The position numbers and the translations under genes were made by a program. From the NCBI GenBank assembly GCA_020891255.1, contig BQFW01000008.1, forward strand, positions 2,542,001 to 2,606,000: a stretch of DNA of 64,000 bases. The letters run 5' to 3'. Position 1 is the first letter of the stretch, and each line of letters opens with the position of its first letter. Below, in pieces: positions 6,471 through 27,383 of this stretch. Below the pieces are notes generated by a model. It was not told the origin of the DNA. It did no database searches and saw only the letters and a list, made by a program, of their open reading frames with translations. The stretch comes from Entomortierella parvispora E1425 (Eukaryota > Fungi > Mortierellomycota).

Positions 6471-8014
6471 CTAAACGACTCCGAGCGCCATGTTGCGAAA
6501 GACTTCGAACCCAGCTGTCGTAAGAGTTACACCTGGAGCCGTCCACAAGATCCTTGGCCCCAATCCTCGGGTCATTTGCCTCCAGAACCGGCCGGTCGAA
6601 GACGAAGCGGTTGAAGAGGTTGTAGTCGCTTTTGTGGCATCCAATGTCGTGAGGGCCGGCTCTCGCAGGAGCGGTCGGCGGATATAAGTTGTTTGTTGTT
6701 GTGGTAATGGTTTGAGCATTGTCGCTGTTCCGCGCGAATTAGTGGCGGTGGCAGTGGCGGTGGCAGTGGTGGTCAAATGAGCGTGCTGGCTCTGGAGCTT
6801 TGAAGAAAGGTGTGCTCCAGTCAACAGGGTATGATGGGTCTGAGGAGGGGAGAGGACGGCTGTTGCAAGCGTCATGGATGATCGAGCAACAGAAGTAGGG
6901 CTCGTTGCTGAGGGGGTGGCGATGGTGCTCTTGGCCTGTTCCAACAAAGGAGTCGAGTTCTGAGAAAGAATTTCCAGGAGATGAATTCGAAGAGCTGACA
7001 CCGAATGACAGACTGCTGCAGAAATGGCTACCGCTCCCGAGACACAGACCATATAGGTTCCTAGATCCAACGGGAATGGGGTTTCGTGGATAGTACCGAA
7101 AGCTACGTCCCCGTAGCTGTTACTGCTGCCATTATCTTTCGAGGAGCCATGATTTGATCCCGAGCGGTTGACGATAACCCAGCGAGCCAGTTGCTTCAAT
7201 TGCTCATACGTCGCAAAATAGAGCATAGTGTACGGCAGTAACGAAGTTAGGGTCGATCCGTATCTAGACCATAAGCCCTTCAGTCCCTCAGCTGAACGTG
7301 CCATTCTTTTGATCAGTCCATAGGCATCCCTTAGCGATAGTTTGGTCCCTGCCACAGCCACAGGTTGCCCTTGTGCCCTTGCTTGCATGGTCTGGAGCTG
7401 GGTCATTGGTGCCCACAGTATCGTTCCAGCAGCCTTGGCTGCCATACCACTGATCAAATGGGTCTCAAAGTGATGCAGATGGAATCGAGAAATGTTCCAT
7501 TCCGTCGACAGATAAGCCAGTCCATGCTTGGTCGCATCATACGTCGAGAGAAAGAAGGCCAACGCTGGCACATTGACGAGCAAGGCAAACGGTACACCCT
7601 TGTAGAGCCCGCGCCAGAACTGGATCCGTTCCCGAAGTGTTTGATGATGCTGTGAATGTTGTTTCCTGATCCTGGACTGTGCTGCCAGCTTTTCCTGCTG
7701 CTGTTGTCGAGGATGATCCTGATGTAGTAAAGAGAGATGCCGATGGACCGCCTCATAGATACGCCGACTACTACTTTGGGCAACGGTTAATCCCTCTAGT
7801 CCTGGCAAAGATGCTTTCAAGTGATCCACTAGATCGGATAAAAGAGTCATTTCGGTTACGATCGGATTCTCCTTCTGGAGATATCGAGCTTGACCATGAA
7901 GATGTAGATTTCGGGGAATTCCTTTTTTTCTTTCTTACATGGATGGATACAGAGTCGAGCACAAAAAGCTGCGGCGGCCGACGTCGCGAGGTTGGTCGAG
8001 ACGTCCGTGGGCAT
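6471..8014 (-). CDS. Mitochondrial carrier family (SLC25-like) protein with long low-complexity insertions, exons 8014-7939 and 7828-6471
   Basis: Exon 1 MPTDVSTNLATSAAAAFCARLCIHP joins across a GTAAGA...TAG intron to LDHLKA, giving the Px[DE]xx[KR] signature. Also present: RGLYKGVP, FFLSTYDATK, GLKGLWSRY, LYFATYEQLK, RGLGPRILWTAPG. Confidence 0.85.
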
Positions 8015-8798
8015 GGGTTTGAATCAGTGTTGGGGTATCTTTGCTTTTGTGGGGGACGAAGTAGCTTGTCCACGGCTATTTGTATGATTCCAGGAGGATC
8101 GTCGAGGCTTAGCGTAACCGCAAAGGGGGAAGGGTCTCTGGTCCAAAAGGAGAGTAATGATGTGAAGAGTAAATCCTTGATTATTAAACGATTCAGGTTC
8201 GGCAGGAGGAGGTGAGGGACATGGTAAGAAAAGAAAGAAGAGATGAAGGAGGGGAAAGGAGAGAGAAGAGAATCGAACCTTTCCTCCACTGAGCCAAAAT
8301 AATAAAAAAAAAATAAAAATGGCGGAGCGTCATCGCAAGACGGCGTGCTCAGATATGGACGGACAGGCATTGCTCTTTCTCTCTCTGTCGCCTTCCTTCC
8401 AGTCCCATCCATAGTCAGGTCCCAAGCTTCAGTTCCAGATCCAATGCATGGATCGGCTCCATTCCTCTGCAAGGACTCAGGTCGTTGAGCAGGCGGCGTC
8501 ATGGTGCGTATTGCCGTCGTCTGTATGTGGATGCAGTCACTCCTTATATGGCTTGACCATTCCGCACTTTCAGGCACCCGTTCGACCAGATCAAGCTGTG
8601 CGGGTGGGTAAATGCCTTTTCGTATCCGATCTGAACCGAGAATCCTATCCTAGCGAGATACGCTGCATGGTTTTCATTTCCTGTCTTTTGGATCAACGGG
8701 ACATACCATGCGCACGGACTGAGGCGACTCGTTCGTGCCTCGAAAGAATAAAGTGAAAAGCTGTGCATTTACATTTACACTTTGAAAAATATGAAAGG

Positions 8799-8829
8799 AG
8801 GACAATTCACGCCATAATGACGTCACTGG
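8799..8829. repeat. Terminal inverted repeat (3' end of the Fanzor element); contains TGACGTCA
   Basis: Inverted match to 13485-13515. Confidence 0.7.
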
Positions 8830-8916
8830 ACGAGATTATAGCATAAACTGTGCCCCAATCAACAATGTGGTGTGTGGGTCCAAACACACAAATAAACTAT
8901 GGACTGGCCCAGTCTA
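8799..8916 (-). ncRNA. Putative omegaRNA scaffold of the Fanzor element; the guide would continue into the flank at 8798-8779
   Basis: Lies between the stop codon and the element's 3' terminus, where Fanzor/TnpB omegaRNAs are encoded. Hairpins on the minus strand: GACTG-ggc-CAGTC, TGTGTG-tttggacc-CACACA, and ACGTCA-tta-TGGCGT next to the end. The 5' boundary is unknown. Confidence 0.5.
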
Positions 8917-11900
8917 CTAAAGCTCCCTCGCCATTTTGGATGCTTCCTGGCTCAGGTTGAGGGAGGATGCTCGCTTTCTTGATCTGGAGGGGCCGTCAGA
9001 CGGGCCGATACTGCTCATTTCCGATGAGCTGTGGGTGTCCACCGCGTCTGTCACTTCTCCAGTAGCAGCTTGCCTCTTCGACGCGCGAGACTTGCTGCGG
9101 GAACTTGCACTTGTAGCTGCACTGGCTTCACTCTCGGTCGTAGAAGCACTGTGACTGACAGCCCCGGAGGGTCCTTTGCCATGACTTTTGACGGTAGAAG
9201 ACGCCCGTGCCTTCGTACTGCTGCCGGTCTTTGTCGCTTTGGACCTGCCTCCTCTTACACTGGTGCTGGCCGTAACATGACTGTCCCCTGTGTTTTCATC
9301 TGATTCGGATATCCAGGGGTATCTGCCATCTTCTGTCACTGGCTGTAGGTGGAGGGGTCTTTCTTGCTTCTCAAGACGCTCCCGCACAATCTTTGCCATA
9401 TTCTCTGCAGCCATAATGTCCCGGTGGTGAAAATGCTTGCAATGCGTGCAGTAGAGTTGCCGGATGGTTACTCGAGCAATGAAGTTGTAACAATTGGGGC
9501 ACTTTTGCGAAGTATAATACTCGTTGATGCCAACCACCAAGTACCCCAGGGATCGTACCTAGTTGAAAAAACAAGGTAAGTCATCACTTGTCAAGACTGT
9601 TTGAGAGAAGACTAGACATGGTAAACAGCTTGTACTTACTAGGGGGATGAAATAATCAAGAAATGACGAGTGCAGAGATGACAGTCGACTGGAGCTCTTG
9701 AATTGCCCCAAGCCGACTCCAATTATAACATGGTTGTTTGGGTCGCGATGTCGTCCGGTAGTCCCTCCCACTATTCGTAGCAACCTCTCGGCGATTGCCT
9801 GATACTCGGCATGTTTGGCTCGTTTCATGTCCCAGGTATGCCTTTTAAACCGCCTATTTCGGCCATTATAAAAGGTGCTCAGGCGTTCTTCGACCTCCTC
9901 TATTTTTTTGACATACTCTTCCACGCTTGATTGTGAGCCTCGAAGAGGAGGGAGGTTCGATTCGATGTCCGATATAGATGACGGTTCAGCCTCCGTGACA
10001 ACGCCTTTCTCTGTGTTTAGCCATCTTCGGTATCGAAGTACAGGTTGCATTACCGCCTTTTGGCTAACAGCAAGATTGAGGTGAACGGGGCCGTCTTGCT
10101 CTGCATCTGTTGGTCTTGTCAGATCCACCGATATGTCCATTGTTGTAGAGAGAGCTCCGTTCCTGCCAGGTAGATATGCGTACGCCCCAACTACGAACGC
10201 TTGGCCGGCATCTAGAGTCAAGATTTTGATATCCGTTGGACGCGCACCGGGCCAAAGCTTCTCGAAATCCATGTCGTCCTTGACAACATTTCTGATCTCT
10301 TGCAAATAGGAGTCGGTTCCCCCAACTGTGGATGATATTCTCGGTGGAAGACGATCTGGGGGAAGCCGCCGGTATCGGACGCACTGAAGCTCTCGAAGCT
10401 TATAGGCAAGCAAGTATACTCTGAACCCATCTGTAAGGATGGAGCCCCTAGATACATAGCCCTTGACGGTATAGTCCTTTGGGTCGAATGTTGGATCATC
10501 TAGCATGCGAAGGTGCCTCCTGAGAGCTTTGAGTGACATGAGCTTGATTGCTGCACGATGTCCTGCCTTGCCTTTCTTGCGACTTGTGAGATCTGAGGGG
10601 TCGATATCGGCAAGGTAACGTTTCAAGAGATAACCGGGCTCCTTGGTCCCGACCCATTCTTGCACATCCTGAATAGTCGGAGCCACCCCTTCATTAGATG
10701 CTAGCTCCGTCAACGATGTTTTGAGATCGCCTCCTCTTTTCATGAAAAATCCCGCCAGCTCTCGCTCAGTAAACCCAACAAATGGCTGCTCTACTGATGT
10801 CATGGGAGCGATTCTCCGGGGCTGTTGGATCAACTTGTTGAGCGAAACGTAGTTTTCAACTGCGGAGACGTCATCTCGAATGAGTATCTGTGTGTTTGTA
10901 TCCAAAATCCCGAGATCCTTAGCCTTCTTGAGCTAGAATAAATAGATCGGAAACGTGGCTATGGTTAGCATTATGGATATCAAGGTATTCTCAGATATTC
11001 TTCACATCTTACCTTATTGTGAATTATGCATGTCCCATGCTTATACATCTTTTCAAGCTCAGCCTTCAGCTGCGTGGCCATTGAGCGCACAAGATCCGTG
11101 GGAGTAAAGGGCATTTTTGACTCGTTGATATCAACGGACGGCGAGACGAAGATTCCAAGTTCCGTGAGACGATCGATAAATGCATTGACCTTGTCCCCCA
11201 TGGAAGAGGGTCTCGGTCGTTTTCCAGAGTACACTACTCGTAGAAAGCTCCAGATAAATGGTGCCTGGACCTTGTCATCCTTCTTTTTTTTTGTTGTGCT
11301 CGTGCTTGGTGGTTGCAGGTCACTATCGTCGCTCTCTACTTCAGGTTCTCCACCGTCGGGATCAAGTTCAGCGTCCACAAGACCGTTGATCTGATTGTCG
11401 TCTTCCTCATCCGCAGCAATGTCGTCAGGATCCTTCACGTCCTCCATACTAACAGGTTGACAGAGGTGGCGCAGGATTTCCTTGTCTACAGAGCTGATGT
11501 GGTCGATTCCAATTTTGTCCAGTTTTTCGATATAGCAGCCAATCAGCCTCTGAGCTTCACGCTTCACTCGAGCTGCCTCGCTTGTCGCTCCCTGAATGAC
11601 CTCCATAACTTCCTGCTGCAGGTCCAGCTGGTTAGGAAGCGCAAGTCTGATATTTGCCTCCAGAGTACCAATGCTCAATGAACTTGTTGGGTGGTGATAG
11701 GCCAAATGTCGAGTTATCGCCAGCTTGTCCGTTGCAGCCGTAGATTTTGACAAGGTCTTCAAAGTGGGTGGATCCTTTGGAGCGGATATCTCCTTTTTGC
11801 GCTTAGTCTCAGGCTCCTTGTATGGTTTGTATGCAAGCTGCTTCATCATTGGGGGTCGTGGATGCTCCTGAGTCCCTTTCCTTGGCTTGAACGAGTATCT

Positions 11901-13288
11901 TGGCTGATGGCAAGGGGTTCGTGTTCTTTGAAGTGCTGGGTGTAGTGCCTCTCCTGTCTGGTTGCCGTGTGAGATGGACGAGTCTTGAGGCTGCTCAACC
12001 GGAGGCGGCATGGTGATACGTGCTCGTGTCAGGCGAGAGTGCTGTATTGCAGGTGACTCTACCGTCTTGTAGCGGTTGCTGGTTGACGATGATCGCAACC
12101 GAATGATATCCTTGGAGTTGCTATAGATATCAAAACAGTACGATGAATACAAAAATTGGCTCATTTCCTTCCATATCTTGAGTTTTGAGCTGTTATATAG
12201 GCATTACCTGCTGTTGGAAGTCGTTTGGAGACTTCTGTTTTGTTGATATCGTTTACAGAGGTCCATAAATCTTTGGCGAAGAGCGTTAAAGGAAGAGTAG
12301 GCAGAATCTGATATCTGACAGGTGCTTGGCGTTTGCAGCCGGTCCGCAAAGACTCGAAGAGCGAGTTCAAATGTCTTGTCGCAGGTGTTTTTGGATTGGA
12401 CACGCTCGTGCTCCAGATATTCCGACACAATCGACCTGGGATCTAAAGACGACAGTTATTGTTTAACGTGTGAACGGGATGGCAAATCAAGACATTACAG
12501 TCGTCTCATTTGTTTCATACCTTCGCCCTTGCTGTTCATGATGACAGAAAGGCTGGTGACTGGACCAAGCGAAAAGATGTTCCTGCCGTAGTCATTTGAC
12601 ACCACACAAGCAAGAGCCGTGAGCTGAGCTGATGACAATCCAAGAGTTGGCAAACATCTGCGCGACTATAGGCCAGATGAAGTCCACGAGAGATGGGTCG
12701 CCAGAGCGTGTAGATAGTGCCATATGCAAGCATGTCACTGTCAGCCGATATGACAATGTCTTCTGGCCGGCAGTCCGCCGCGATGGCAACATCAGCCTCT
12801 GTCTCACATATCCGAACAGTCCATCCAGCCTTGATCAGGTAATCGATGAAATCCTGGCGAACTGAGGATGGCCAATAGAAAAGTGATGCAAGGCTCTTCT
12901 TGACATCGACGAAATGTCGCTTCCTAGCCTTTTGGTTGTCGGTGACTCGTTGCTCGAGTGCGTCAAGGTTCTTGTAGCATTTTTCAGCGGCTTTGTCACG
13001 GTTGGCCTTTCGTTTTTTTGCTGTTTCCTCTTTCTCCACCGCTGCGCCACCATCAATGTAAAGAATGAGTCTATCCTTCCCGCCATAACGCAAAAAATTT
13101 GCTTCAAGGACCTGGTGCGCTTCTTCGGGTGCCTTAAAAGAGTATGCGTTGCGGATGATAGAGTAAAACGACAGCACATCAAGACGTTTTGTACGATCGG
13201 TCATAGTTGACTTCACGTTGGAGGGATAAATGACAGAAGGTTCATAGCCCTTTTTGCGCAAAAAGGGGAACCAATCTTGTAATCCCAT
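8917..13288 (-). CDS. EXO1/XPG/FEN1-family nuclease fused to a Fanzor1 (TnpB-like RuvC) endonuclease, ~1348 aa; exons 13288-12521, 12442-12208, 12120-11013, 10932-9640, 9558-8917; 1-bp frameshift at ~12640
   Basis: N-terminus MGLQDWF, RLDVLS, YIDGG-x5-K-x6-R, CETEADV, ISADSDML and, after restoring one G, LGLSSAQLTALACVVSNDYGRNIFSLGP (H3TH). C-terminus ILTLDAGQ (RuvC-I), VIIGVGLGQF, VGINEYYTSQKCPNC...CTHC...HRDIMAAENM (RuvC-II, Zn finger, RuvC-III). Four GT-AG introns of 78-87 bp with phases 1, 2, 0, 0 that join the frames exactly. Confidence 0.88.
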
Positions 13289-13484
13289 CAGAGGCACAAT
13301 TTAGAGAATGAGTAAAAGAGCAGATGATAAAAGGAGATGTAAAAGCGGAAAACGATGTAGATGCGAAGGGTTGTCGCTGGTAATGTGTAATGAGGAGCGT
13401 GGGGGAGCGTGGTGGGCTATATAGGAAAAAGGCAAGGAGCGCGTATGCGCGCTTAAATGGGCCAATTGTAGCTCTCAATCCCAG

Positions 13485-13515
13485 CCAATGAGAGAATTAG
13501 GGCGTGGATTGTCCT
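13485..13515. repeat. Terminal inverted repeat (5' end of the Fanzor element)
   Basis: Inverted match to 8799-8829. Confidence 0.7.
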
Positions 13516-13636
13516 GGGCCCGCCAAAATTCGGTGACGTCATCCGGCACTCCCGGATTCATTTCCGCGCTTTCCTTTGGGACATGCGTGCAAGGTCGAAC
13601 ATCATCCACACTCCTCCATCCCTCCATCACATCACA

Positions 13637-24662: not shown

Positions 24663-25271
24663 TCGAACAATGGAGCCCAGGCGCTGTCAGAGGCACTTGA
24701 GACCAACTCGACTCTGACCACTTTGAAGATGTAGTGTAACAATATCGAAGAGAAAGGATATCAGGCGATGGCCGAGGCACTCAAGACCAACTCGACTCTT
24801 ACCATTTTGTACTTGACTAACAACCAGATGGAAGAGAAAGGAAGTCAGGCGCTGTCAGAGGCACTCAAGACCAACTCGACTCTCACCATTTTGAACTTGA
24901 GTAACAACCAGATGGGAGAGAAAGAAATTCGGTTGCTATCAGAGGCACTCAAGACCAACTCAACTCTGACCACTCTGGACTTAGAGGACAATTCGATCGG
25001 TTCCAAGGGAGCTCAAACACTGTCAGAGGAGCTCACTGCCAACTCGACTCTGACCACTTTGAAATTGACCAACAACTCGATCTCGTCCGGATCTGGAACC
25101 TTACCTGCACGATGGGAAAAATGCTTGACATTGGAGGGAGGTTTCTACTACGTGGATCATAATATCAAATCGACCAGCTGGAGAGAACCCAAAACCTCAT
25201 CCGATTGCCCGCAGGATGGAAAATTAGAGAGAGAAAAAGAACAGACTCTAAGTGGAGCCGGCACTCCTTGA
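24663..25271 (+). pseudogene. Truncated RNI-like LRR (NLRC3-like, 28-aa repeats) plus WW-domain gene fragment
   Basis: Five ALSEALKTNSTLTxLxLxxNxI repeats with an in-frame TAG at 24732 and no intact 5' part, followed by the WW motif LPARWEKCLTLEGGFYYVDHNIKSTSWREP. Confidence 0.75.
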
Positions 25272-25358: not shown

Positions 25359-26822
25359 TAGTGGGGCGCCCCAATCTCTACTGCAACGCCAGGTAGACAT
25401 GCATGGACACTGTTGGGGACATGTCGGTAAGATGTATTCACTCATCCGTTCTGAATTATCGTCTCTCTTTACTTCGCCTTTCACAATTGCCTCTTTTATG
25501 TAGTTCACCCAGACTTGATCCCCATCACATTACCAAAACTAATAAAGGTTGTAACCGAGGATGGGTCGACTTCCGATCCTCGGATATCACCCCCTCGGGG
25601 TCGTTTACTATTATTTCTTGGCGTTGGAATGGGTCAATGCATCACTACGCGCCAGGAGTGCGGGGGCGAATGGGGCAAATATTATTCGCCCTTTTCTCGG
25701 CACATTTGGTAGCACACATTCTTGAGCTCGAGGCAAATGTTCTTATAGCATTTCTGACCGTTAAACAGAAAAAAACTTTGCGCCCTGGTGCACCAAGTGA
25801 ACCTACTGATTGCCAAGTGAACCAGCGGCCTGCACGTTCTGACCAGACTGTAGTTCCCTATCCGATACCTGTCACAATCGGTGTTTATAAAGGCTTTCAA
25901 AGAGTCCAAACAGAGTCTTACTGGTGCGAGTAGCAATCCCAAGCTTGCACGCAGAGTACATCCAGGCACTCATAAGAGGAAGACATTGCGGGATTCCAAA
26001 GGCTTGTAACCAGGGAGATAGAAAAACAACATGCAACAACACAAAATAATCTCAGGTGTTCTGTTTTTTTTCCCATCCGCTCCCGGAGCGAGAGAACGAT
26101 TAGTGGGGCGCCCCAATCTCTACTGCAACGCCAGGTAGACATGCATGGAAACTGTTGGGGACGTGTCGGTAAGATGTATTCACTCTTCCGTTCTGAATTA
26201 TCGTCTCTCTTTACTTCGCCTTTCACAATTGCCTCTTTTATGTAGCTCACCCAAACTCAATCCGCCACCACATTACCAAAACTAATAAAGGTTGTAACCG
26301 GGGATGGGTCGACTTCACATCCCCGGATATCACCCCCTCGGGGTCGTTTACTATTATTTCTTGGCGTTGGAATGGGTCAATGCATCTCTACGCGCCAGGA
26401 GTGCGGGGGCGAATGGGGCGAATATTATTCGCCCTTTTCTCGGCACATTTGGTAGCACACATTTCTTGAGCTCGAGGCAAATGTTCTTATAGCATTTCTG
26501 ATCGTTAAAGAGAAAAAGACATTGCGCCCTGGTGCACCAAGTGAACCTACTGATTGCCAAGTGAACCAGCGGCCTGCACGTTCTGACCAGACTGTAGTTC
26601 CCTATCCGATACCTGTCACAATCGGTGTTTATAAAGGCTTTCAAAGAGTCCAAACAGAGTCTTACTGGTGCGAGTAGCAATCCCAAGCTTGCACGCAGAG
26701 TACATCCAGGCACTCATAAGAGGAAGACATTGCGGGATTCCAAAGGCTTGTAACCAGGGAGATAGAAAAACAACATGCAACAACACAAAATAATCTCATG
26801 TTAGGTGTTCTGTTTTTTTTCC
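25359..26822 (+). repeat. Direct tandem duplication with a 742-bp period (copies ~25359-26070 and ~26101-26822), each carrying a 77-bp GT-AG intron; probable duplicated pseudogene fragments
   Basis: TAGTGGGGCGCCCCAATCTCTACTGC starts at 25359 and at 26101, and the sequences stay near-identical to GGTGTTCTGTTTTTTTT. Introns at 25427-25503 and 26169-26245. Confidence 0.92.
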
Positions 26823-26900: not shown

Positions 26901-27186
26901 GATGCAAGAAGTTGAGCATGCTCGATTGCATATCCGCGTTTTGCCTACCAGAATGTTTGGCCTATCCTCTCCAGCCGTTCTGCAACTCTTTGCATACGTT
27001 TGATGCAAACGATGGTCGACTGCATATCCGCACTTTGCCTACCAGCATGTTTGGCCTGTCCTCTCCAGCCGTTTTGCAACCCTTGGCAAACCTTTGATGC
27101 AAACGATGCTCGACTGCATATCCGCACTTTGCCTACAGGTATGTCTAGCTGGTTCTCTCCAACCGCCCTCCGCCCCTTGGCAAACG
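26901..27186. repeat. Three tandem copies of a 94-bp non-coding repeat
   Basis: TGCATATCCGC recurs at 26927, 27021 and 27115. The period of 94 is not a multiple of 3. Confidence 0.9.
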
Positions 27187-27194
27187 TATAAATA
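27187..27194 (+). promoter_or_regulatory. TATA box (TATAAATA) of the secreted-protein gene
   Basis: Canonical TATA about 190 bp upstream of the ATG at 27384, directly after the 94-bp repeats. Confidence 0.45.
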
Positions 27195-27383
27195 TCGAAA
27201 TATCCCTCCATCAAAACATCCTCAACTCAACCAACCTTCTCCTCTTGCCTGTAAGTACCTACCCGCACCATCCTGACCACAAACAGAACTCCCTTGTGTT
27301 CCTGAGACTTTTATACTAACCAGGCCCACCACTTGCTACCCAACACTTTACAGTCCTATCAAGACTCCAACGAACTCCAGAAA

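Follow-up and report, generated by a model that had tools for sequence, protein, structure and literature searches.

The window analysed here is a stretch of 64,000 nucleotides (nt) from the fungus Entomortierella parvispora E1425 (contig BQFW01000008.1, positions 2,542,001 to 2,606,000), numbered below from its first letter. Between 13288 and 8917, on the minus strand, it carries a predicted gene whose 1348-codon frame, interrupted by a single break, is assembled from five exons spliced across four GT–AG introns. Comparison with homologues supports a gene model in which a 5' nuclease of the Rad2/XPG superfamily is joined, in one chain, to a Fanzor1-type RuvC nuclease. The gene lies between terminal inverted repeats (TIRs), and its stop codon is followed by a conserved non-coding segment. 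The coordinates of all of these features are collected in Table 1.

In the list of open reading frames (ORFs) for the window, the gene appears as six separate pieces on the minus strand between 13297 and 8917. A preliminary description, made from the letters of the window, had joined five minus-strand ORFs through four introns, and the introns proved to be exact in their coordinates, in their GT..AG borders and in their phases (1, 2, 0 and 0). The single protein of ~1348 amino acids that it proposed stood as regards length and joins, but a frameshift in exon 1 had been left unstated, although a 'repaired protein' was mentioned. The literal splice, 4046 nt, is not a multiple of three. With one N (read as X) inserted at the break, the conceptual product is 1348 amino acids long and has no internal stops, and every residue that the description had named carries in it the number it was given.

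The break can be placed closely. The frame that starts at the ATG at 13288 stops at 12536, the frame required by the phase-1 intron opens only at about 12653, and the switch is located between about 12668 and 12640. Where homologues read without interruption (...LVYDVNGVMATLGINQAQLT...), the reading of the window is split between two successive frames, ...LAYSRADVC and LPTLGLSSAQLT; one base is absent between 12648 and 12647. Three of four runs from the same species (X1, X3 and X7) contain one extra base behind plus-strand position 12647, and this base restores ...LAYSRADVCQTLGLSSAQLT..., a position-for-position match to the homologues. At the break, the X1 contig is 216 nt long and has only two further differences from the window. 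Elsewhere, X1 differs from the window by 0.3–3%, so it is either the allele of another strain or a close paralogue. Runs X6 and X7, of unknown type and from the same species, yielded only very short contigs (55–109 nt) of very high word depth, scattered over the gene at 11156-11289, 11812-11891, 12729-12817 and 13047-13289; most are 90–95% alike, a few closer, and they may derive from diverged copies as fragments of repeats.

Intron 2 of the window copy contains an ATG, at 12164, that opens an ORF of 394 amino acids running into exon 3. The five other loci compared lack it, and a two-gene model whose second gene would begin at this codon was rejected as the conserved state.

Table 1. The gene, its element and their homologues (positions are those of the window unless a locus is named)
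Feature	Position	Strand	Length	Description
TIR, gene's 5' side	13477..13515		39 nt	AGGACAATCCACGCC...
Exon 1	12521..13288	-		FEN/XPG-like nuclease core, MG start, D37 to helix-three-turn-helix (H3TH) D233; 1-base loss
Intron 1	12443..12520	-	78 nt	GT..AG, phase 1
Exon 2	12208..12442	-		Helical tail of nuclease domain, conserved (EYL...FELALRVF...)
Intron 2	12121..12207	-	87 nt	GT..AG, phase 2; in-frame ATG at 12164
Exon 3	11013..12120	-		Linker of ~370 amino acids (Ser/Pro/Lys-rich) with TKKKKDD
Intron 3	10933..11012	-	80 nt	GT..AG, phase 0; CTAAC branch-point-like motif
Exon 4	9640..10932	-		Fanzor1 stretch matching SpuFz1 upstream of RuvC, RuvC-I D945, RuvC-II Gly (IGVGLG)
Intron 4	9559..9639	-	81 nt	GT..AG, phase 0
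Exon 5	8917..9558	-		E1148, C4 zinc ribbon, RuvC-III D1182, Ser-rich tail with SRKR
Stop codon	8917-8919	-		End of exon 5
Conserved 3' non-coding segment	8799..8916	-	118 nt	Stop codon to element end
TIR, gene's 3' side	8799..8837		39 nt	AGGACAATTCACGCC...
Alike flanks	8787-8798, 13516-13539; L001:1991-2014, 7337-7350
Intron-4-less homologues	L009:2923-4389, L010:2025-3491, L011:786-3260			Introns 1-3 kept
P0159, Podila horticola KAF9310920.1			1284 aa	Closest intact homologue
P0029, Actinomortierella ambigua			1310 aa
P0040, Actinomortierella ambigua			1185 aa
P0151, Actinomortierella ambigua			1269 aa
P0156, Mortierella sp. AD094			1315 aa
P0042, Dissophora globulifera			1166 aa
P0051, Entomortierella parvispora			1191 aa
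P0005, Mortierella sp. NVP41			1132 aa

Two nuclease domains and a linker

The N-terminal domain is seen only faintly by Pfam. The 209-residue piece of the window scores 20.6 bits with Pox_G5, 19.0 with XPG_I and 15.9 with XPG_I_2, all of them below threshold; among the homologues only one (P0021, 30.2 bits) passes the XPG_I gathering score, and XPG_N was never reported. The piece also has two weak, collinear matches to archaeal FEN-1, one before the frameshift and one after it. When a profile built from 15 N-termini of the family is searched against PDB sequences, it matches M. jannaschii FEN-1 (8.4e-11), the yeast Rad2 core (1e-10), human FEN1 (4e-9), human EXO1 (1.4e-8) and XPG (about 5e-8), and in these alignments YxDG-x4-EK-x6-R, TEAD, DSD and NDY overlay the catalytic motifs of FEN-1 and Rad2. 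All seven active-site carboxylates are present—D37, D79, E164, D166, D183, D185 and D233—together with the gateway residues K86 and R93. E164, D166 and D185 are invariant in the family, and conservation at D183 and D233 is 90% or more.

An AlphaFold2 model of residues 1-335 of the Podila homologue, P0159, which is ~57% identical to the window protein, was made from a 19-row alignment and has a mean pLDDT (predicted local distance difference test) of 90.2 and a pTM (predicted template modelling score) of 0.85. The region of exon 2 is helical in it. Directly after DG..K..R comes a helix of 33 residues (84-116) and then a second (123-136), at the place that the arch occupies in FEN1 and EXO1. These enzymes thread free 5' ends through their helical gateway. 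The 50 best matches of the model to the PDB by Foldseek are EXO1, FEN1, Rad2 and XPG structures only; EXO1 has the best E-value (2.5e-10), and FEN1 the higher TM-score (0.62–0.64).

The domain is thus like FEN1, EXO1 and Rad2 (XPG) in its MG start, in the DG-x5-K-x6-R gateway motif, in the E-A-D and D-S-D acid pairs, in the Asp of the H3TH 'NDY' and in overall fold. It differs from them in being divergent (13–17% identity to solved structures, and mostly below the Pfam gathering scores), in having the linker and the Fanzor part in place of the C-terminal tail of the cellular enzymes, and in being fused to an RNA-guided nuclease and borne by a mobile element. It is a genuine but divergent member of the Rad2/XPG/FEN1 superfamily.

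Exons 2 to 4 have no significant family in Pfam or NCBIfam. The linker encoded by exon 3 (~370 amino acids) is 40% identical to that of the Podila protein, and its final ~100 amino acids, leading into the Fanzor part, are better conserved. Basic runs occur in it at residue 611 (TKKKKDD) and near the C-terminus of the protein at residue 1328 (SRKR).

The C-terminal part is Fanzor1. Exon 5 matches Pfam PF07282 (Cas12f1-like TNB, the OrfB zinc ribbon) with 45.8 bits, against a cut-off of 26.3, and NCBIfam guided_TnpB with E = 3.9e-10. A profile of the family C-termini matches the mimivirus Fanzor2 L79 (6.6e-5), LaTranC, and, more remotely, SpuFz1 of Spizellomyces punctatus (0.026). The motif that Bao and Jurka gave for these proteins, D-X(125,275)-[TS][TS]-X-X-C4 zinc finger-X(5,50)-RD (PMC3627910), is satisfied by D945 (LTLDAG), TS at 1151-1152, CPNC at 1155, CTHC at 1172 and RD at 1181-1182 (HRD, with D1182). 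In Fanzors, the canonical Glu of RuvC-II is replaced by Gly or Pro, and an alternative Glu lies about 45 residues away; Jiang et al. report that mutation of this residue, E467A, abolishes cleavage (PMC10530073 for both statements). The window shows this rearranged pattern: Gly stands at the canonical position (IGVGLG, 1108-1113), and ~40 residues downstream E1148 (GINEYYTS) falls, in the profile alignment, on E467 of the mimivirus protein (ApmFz). The pattern is conserved in the homologues. A model of P0159:690-1284, made from a 60-row alignment (this homologue is 55–65% identical to the window protein here), has a pLDDT of 83.6. In the PDB, Foldseek places SpuFz1 first (E = 1.2e-8, 546 columns); Parasitella PpFz and Guillardia GtFz come next, ahead of Fanzor2, Cas12 proteins and TnpB.

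The Fanzor1-type RuvC of the preliminary description was accordingly borne out by PF07282, by the motif, by the Gly/Glu pattern and by the structural ranking of SpuFz1, and matches to both SpuFz1 and EXO1, which it had proposed to look for, were obtained with the homologue models. For the N-terminus, it had named an EXO1/XPG nuclease. The superfamily and the complete active site stand; a preference for EXO1 above FEN1 or Rad2 does not, since EXO1 ranks behind FEN-1 and Rad2 by profile and, for all its leading E-value with Foldseek, has a lower TM-score than FEN1.

Conservation of the fusion in the Mortierellaceae

Relatives were sought by HMMER, with exon 4 as the query, among 1.84 billion representative proteins. 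There were 627, and for 190 of them the E-value was below 1e-30. When the six window pieces were compared with these matches by local BLAST, proteins emerged that carry all of the pieces, in the same order, on one chain. These collinear gene models are 1130–1315 amino acids long and come from at least six genera of Mortierellaceae, namely Podila, Actinomortierella, Dissophora, Mortierella, Entomortierella and Linnemannia (Table 1), and fragmentary models, some of them likewise from Linnemannia, widen the range of the family to Haplosporangium and Gamsiella. Identity to the intact Podila horticola protein is 57% for the first part of exon 1 (1a), 60% for the second (1b), 49% for exon 2 (which aligns to residues 259-326), 40% for exon 3, 55% for exon 4 and 65% for exon 5. 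Because the pieces of the window are collinear with an intact protein at 40–65% identity, their arrangement is far beyond chance. In the ESM Atlas, the family corresponds to a cluster with a 1312-residue representative and 58 members from Mucoromycota (match 0.99). A word-index protein search with the N-terminal domain of P0042 gave only five matches and is useless as a census.

Fusion-family proteins are thus already in GenBank, unrecognised for what they are: the homologues are labelled variously 'hypothetical protein', 'Rad2 nuclease', 'putative transposase' and 'Cas12f1-like TNB domain-containing protein'.

Five gene models, from five genera, whose exon structures were recovered from their loci, have in common four homologous intron positions, of phases 1, 2, 0 and 0; some have extra introns as well. 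In metagenomic or Logan contigs (L009/L010 and L011), intron 4 is absent, and exons 4 and 5 run on contiguously in one frame, from which, independently of any gene predictor, we take these exons to be truly contiguous coding sequence. Intron content therefore varies within the family. The suggestion that the contigs are complementary DNA was rejected; they contain introns 1-3, and are genomic copies.

In every full-length homologue both active sites are kept: at the N-terminus all nine residues named above, and in the Fanzor part those of RuvC and of the zinc ribbon. As far as comparison of genomic and protein sequences can show it, then, the two-nuclease architecture, its conservation in the family and the retention of both sites are established.

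The carrier element and its 3' end

The TIRs end in AGGACAATYCACGCC. Contigs from the same species cease to match the window at 8792-8799 and at 13514-13542, points at the ends of the TIRs, and this fits other copies or strains in which the element has different surroundings. Within 8799-13515, the ORF list of the window holds no transposase ORF. Nor were the marks that would identify a carrier of the MULE/MuDr or Academ type—a diagnostic target-site duplication (TSD; 9–10 bp for MULE) and a cognate transposase—found at the window copy. We consider that the region (about 8799-13515) is probably one copy of a transposase-less, TIR-bounded element family spread across the Mortierellaceae, in which the fusion is the only gene.

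The ends have some further peculiarities. At the Podila locus (L001), an 8-bp direct repeat, AAATTTCA, lies 6 nt outside each AGGACAAT repeat. The flanks beyond the AGGACAAT repeats are alike in the window and in Podila (CCTTTCATATTT compared with GCTTTCAAATTT; GGGCCC compared with GGGTTC); either the true ends are further out, or the elements favour similar targets. A CRE/ATF-like palindrome, TGACGTCA, occurs at 8818-8825, in the 3' TIR region, and again at 13534-13541, beyond the 5' TIR by about 19 nt.

The non-coding segment of 118 nt that follows the stop codon, with the TIR as its last ~20 nt, is 79% identical to the Podila locus, compared with 63–73% in coding segments. It folds with a predicted energy of -43.4 kcal/mol (z = -4.36) into two hairpins, one of GUGUGU/ACACAC and the other long, terminal and inclusive of the TIR; the same layout recurs in Podila (L001:7208-7336). 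The second of these hairpins arises by pairing of the TIR with an inverted copy of itself in subterminal position, on either side of a GUGACGU loop region. Four other loci (L001, L002, L007 and L008) also have the motif CGGTGACGT in their 3' ends. Rfam gave no relevant match to the 3' non-coding end. Its properties fit those of an omega-RNA scaffold, for which it is a candidate.

Elsewhere in the window, and unrelated to the fusion gene, is a block of tandem and direct repeats (24669-25088, 25359-26762 and 26918-27199). It includes an 84-nt periodic array, three 94-nt units, and copies of a ~660-nt tract that are 96–99% identical and spaced ~743 nt apart.

A possible cut-and-resect enzyme

In the fold of its C-terminal ~600 amino acids, the fusion is like the Fanzor1 proteins SpuFz1 (PDB 8GKH and 9CEU) and PpFz of Parasitella parasitica. 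It shares with Fanzor1 the motif, the RuvC-II Gly with its alternative Glu, the introns and the basic runs that resemble nuclear localization signals (NLSs), and is likewise carried by a DNA element that has TIRs and whose non-coding 3' end is structured. It differs in the addition of the N-terminal FEN/EXO1-like domain (~330 amino acids) and the linker, which bring it to ~1350 amino acids, as against 600–607 residues in the PDB chains of SpuFz, and its sequence similarity to the solved Fanzors is remote. Its RuvC and zinc-ribbon nuclease is homologous also to bacterial TnpB, the omega-RNA-guided protein of IS200/IS605 elements, with which it may also share, by analogy, a guide RNA from the 3' end of the element and a role in element maintenance. 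Unlike TnpB, it is eukaryotic and spliced, its TIR element has no TnpA, and a second nuclease domain is on the same chain.

The explanation that we favour, and hold to be likely, is that the gene encodes a protein of ~1350 amino acids in which a FEN1/EXO1/Rad2-like nuclease is connected by a low-complexity linker with NLS-like runs to a Fanzor1. Purely by inference, the whole would serve to cut and resect DNA. The Fanzor part would be loaded with omega-RNA made from the element's conserved and structured 3' end, and the complex would cut a matching site from which the element is absent. Fanzors are DNA endonucleases that can be programmed with RNA (PMC10432273 and PMC10530073). The tethered 5' nuclease would then thread the free 5' termini, or the flaps, that RuvC leaves on making its staggered cut, and trim or resect them. 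Repair would in this way be biased towards homologous recombination with the copy that bears the element, leading to its retention or homing, in the manner of bacterial TnpB, which maintains its element by homologous recombination stimulated by a double-strand break (PMC10690162). That the family at large is a natural two-nuclease, RNA-guided effector of this kind, in which Fanzor1 cuts and the FEN/EXO1-like module processes 5' ends to promote recombination, we propose more tentatively.

Other roles for the N-terminal domain can be imagined. It might be a second strand cutter, acting on the non-target strand or on a 5' flap at the R-loop, and so sharing or reshaping the double-strand cut. Rad2/XPG-family enzymes generally cut at junctions of single- and double-stranded DNA, both active sites are conserved on the one chain, and a flexible linker of this length would allow the domain to reach the R-loop. 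We regard this as rather unlikely, however. The RuvC triad of the Fanzor1 part is intact, Fanzors are reported to be RNA-programmable DNA endonucleases (PMC10530073), and the long pair of helices modelled after DG..K..R is as in FEN1 and EXO1, where free 5' ends are threaded, and unlike XPG and GEN1, which act on bubbles or junctions. The domain could also serve transposition, or the release of omega-RNA from the 3' untranslated region of the messenger RNA (mRNA), and be fused to the Fanzor for co-expression only. XPG-type nucleases occur as accessory genes of Academ-type transposons, and the element has TIRs. DNA transposons, among them MuDr-like elements of Mucoromycota, have repeatedly captured Fanzor1 genes (PMC3627910). 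This idea seems to us improbable in view of the lack of a transposase in the element, and of the conservation across genera of the fusion, the linker and the four intron positions, which suggests selection on the single chain.

Least credible is that there are two products, namely an XPG-like protein of ~335 amino acids, ending at a TAA that the donor of intron 2 creates, and a downstream Fanzor, the fusion being an artefact of prediction. In four of six loci, read-through in the frame of exon 2 stops after one codon, so that the reading frame of an unspliced transcript would close shortly behind the nuclease domain; in the window, the ATG of intron 2 (12164) opens the frame of exon 3; and the evidence for the fusion is comparative rather than from RNA. 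That ATG is missing from all five other loci, however, an intergenic gap of ~40 nt is implausible in a eukaryote, exon 3 is open and conserved right from its acceptor site, and five genera share the phase-2 intron. We think it very improbable.

Several observations nevertheless count against the cut-and-resect explanation, or limit it. The four junctions and the single mRNA rest on comparative evidence, not on transcripts: contigs from the four same-species runs, which are of DNA or unknown type, contain no intron-skipping joints, and the supporting gene models of the homologues are themselves computer predictions. The window copy, as read, is frameshifted, and would be either a very young pseudogene or the product of an assembly indel. 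Its N-terminal piece, at 19.0 bits, does not reach the XPG_I gathering score of 24.9, and both structure models are of the Podila homologue rather than of the window protein. At the ends of the window copy there is no TSD of at least 7 bp, and the consensus RNA fold of six 3' ends shows weak covariation. Nuclease activity, guide use and the coupling of the domains are putative.

To our knowledge, no RNA-guided DNA endonucleases other than Fanzors are known from eukaryotes. The Fanzor literature examined describes single-nuclease proteins. A search of full-text literature outside the subscription journals found no publication on a natural Fanzor–nuclease fusion, and none that links Fanzors with XPG or with Mortierella; a search within the main Fanzor papers (including PMC10530073 and PMC3627910) found no such fusion either. 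Among papers that mention both TnpB and XPG, the one listed is a study of the R-loop mechanism of Cas12a, with a single mention of each, and those that combine Fanzor with flaps are genome-editing papers only, mostly reviews. The preliminary description knew of no such fusion but allowed that one might have been described, and no description of it was found; a Fanzor1 with a fused FEN/EXO1-like nuclease is apparently a natural pairing not described before.

Engineered Cas9/Cas12–exonuclease fusions couple an RNA-guided cutter with a nuclease that works on DNA ends in the 5'–3' direction. The protein described here would be a natural counterpart of such fusions, which are made for homology-directed repair (HDR) or for defined deletions; it differs from them in occurring naturally, with conservation throughout a fungal family, and its end-processing role is a predicted one. 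If the explanation is true, the element is a self-contained eukaryotic 'cut-and-resect' homing device, and a template for HDR-biased genome editors. For the fungi themselves, a Fanzor hard-wired to a 5' end-processing nuclease, with both sites conserved across the family, suggests a testable hypothesis: that the processing of breaks and the choice of repair pathway belong to the strategy of the element.

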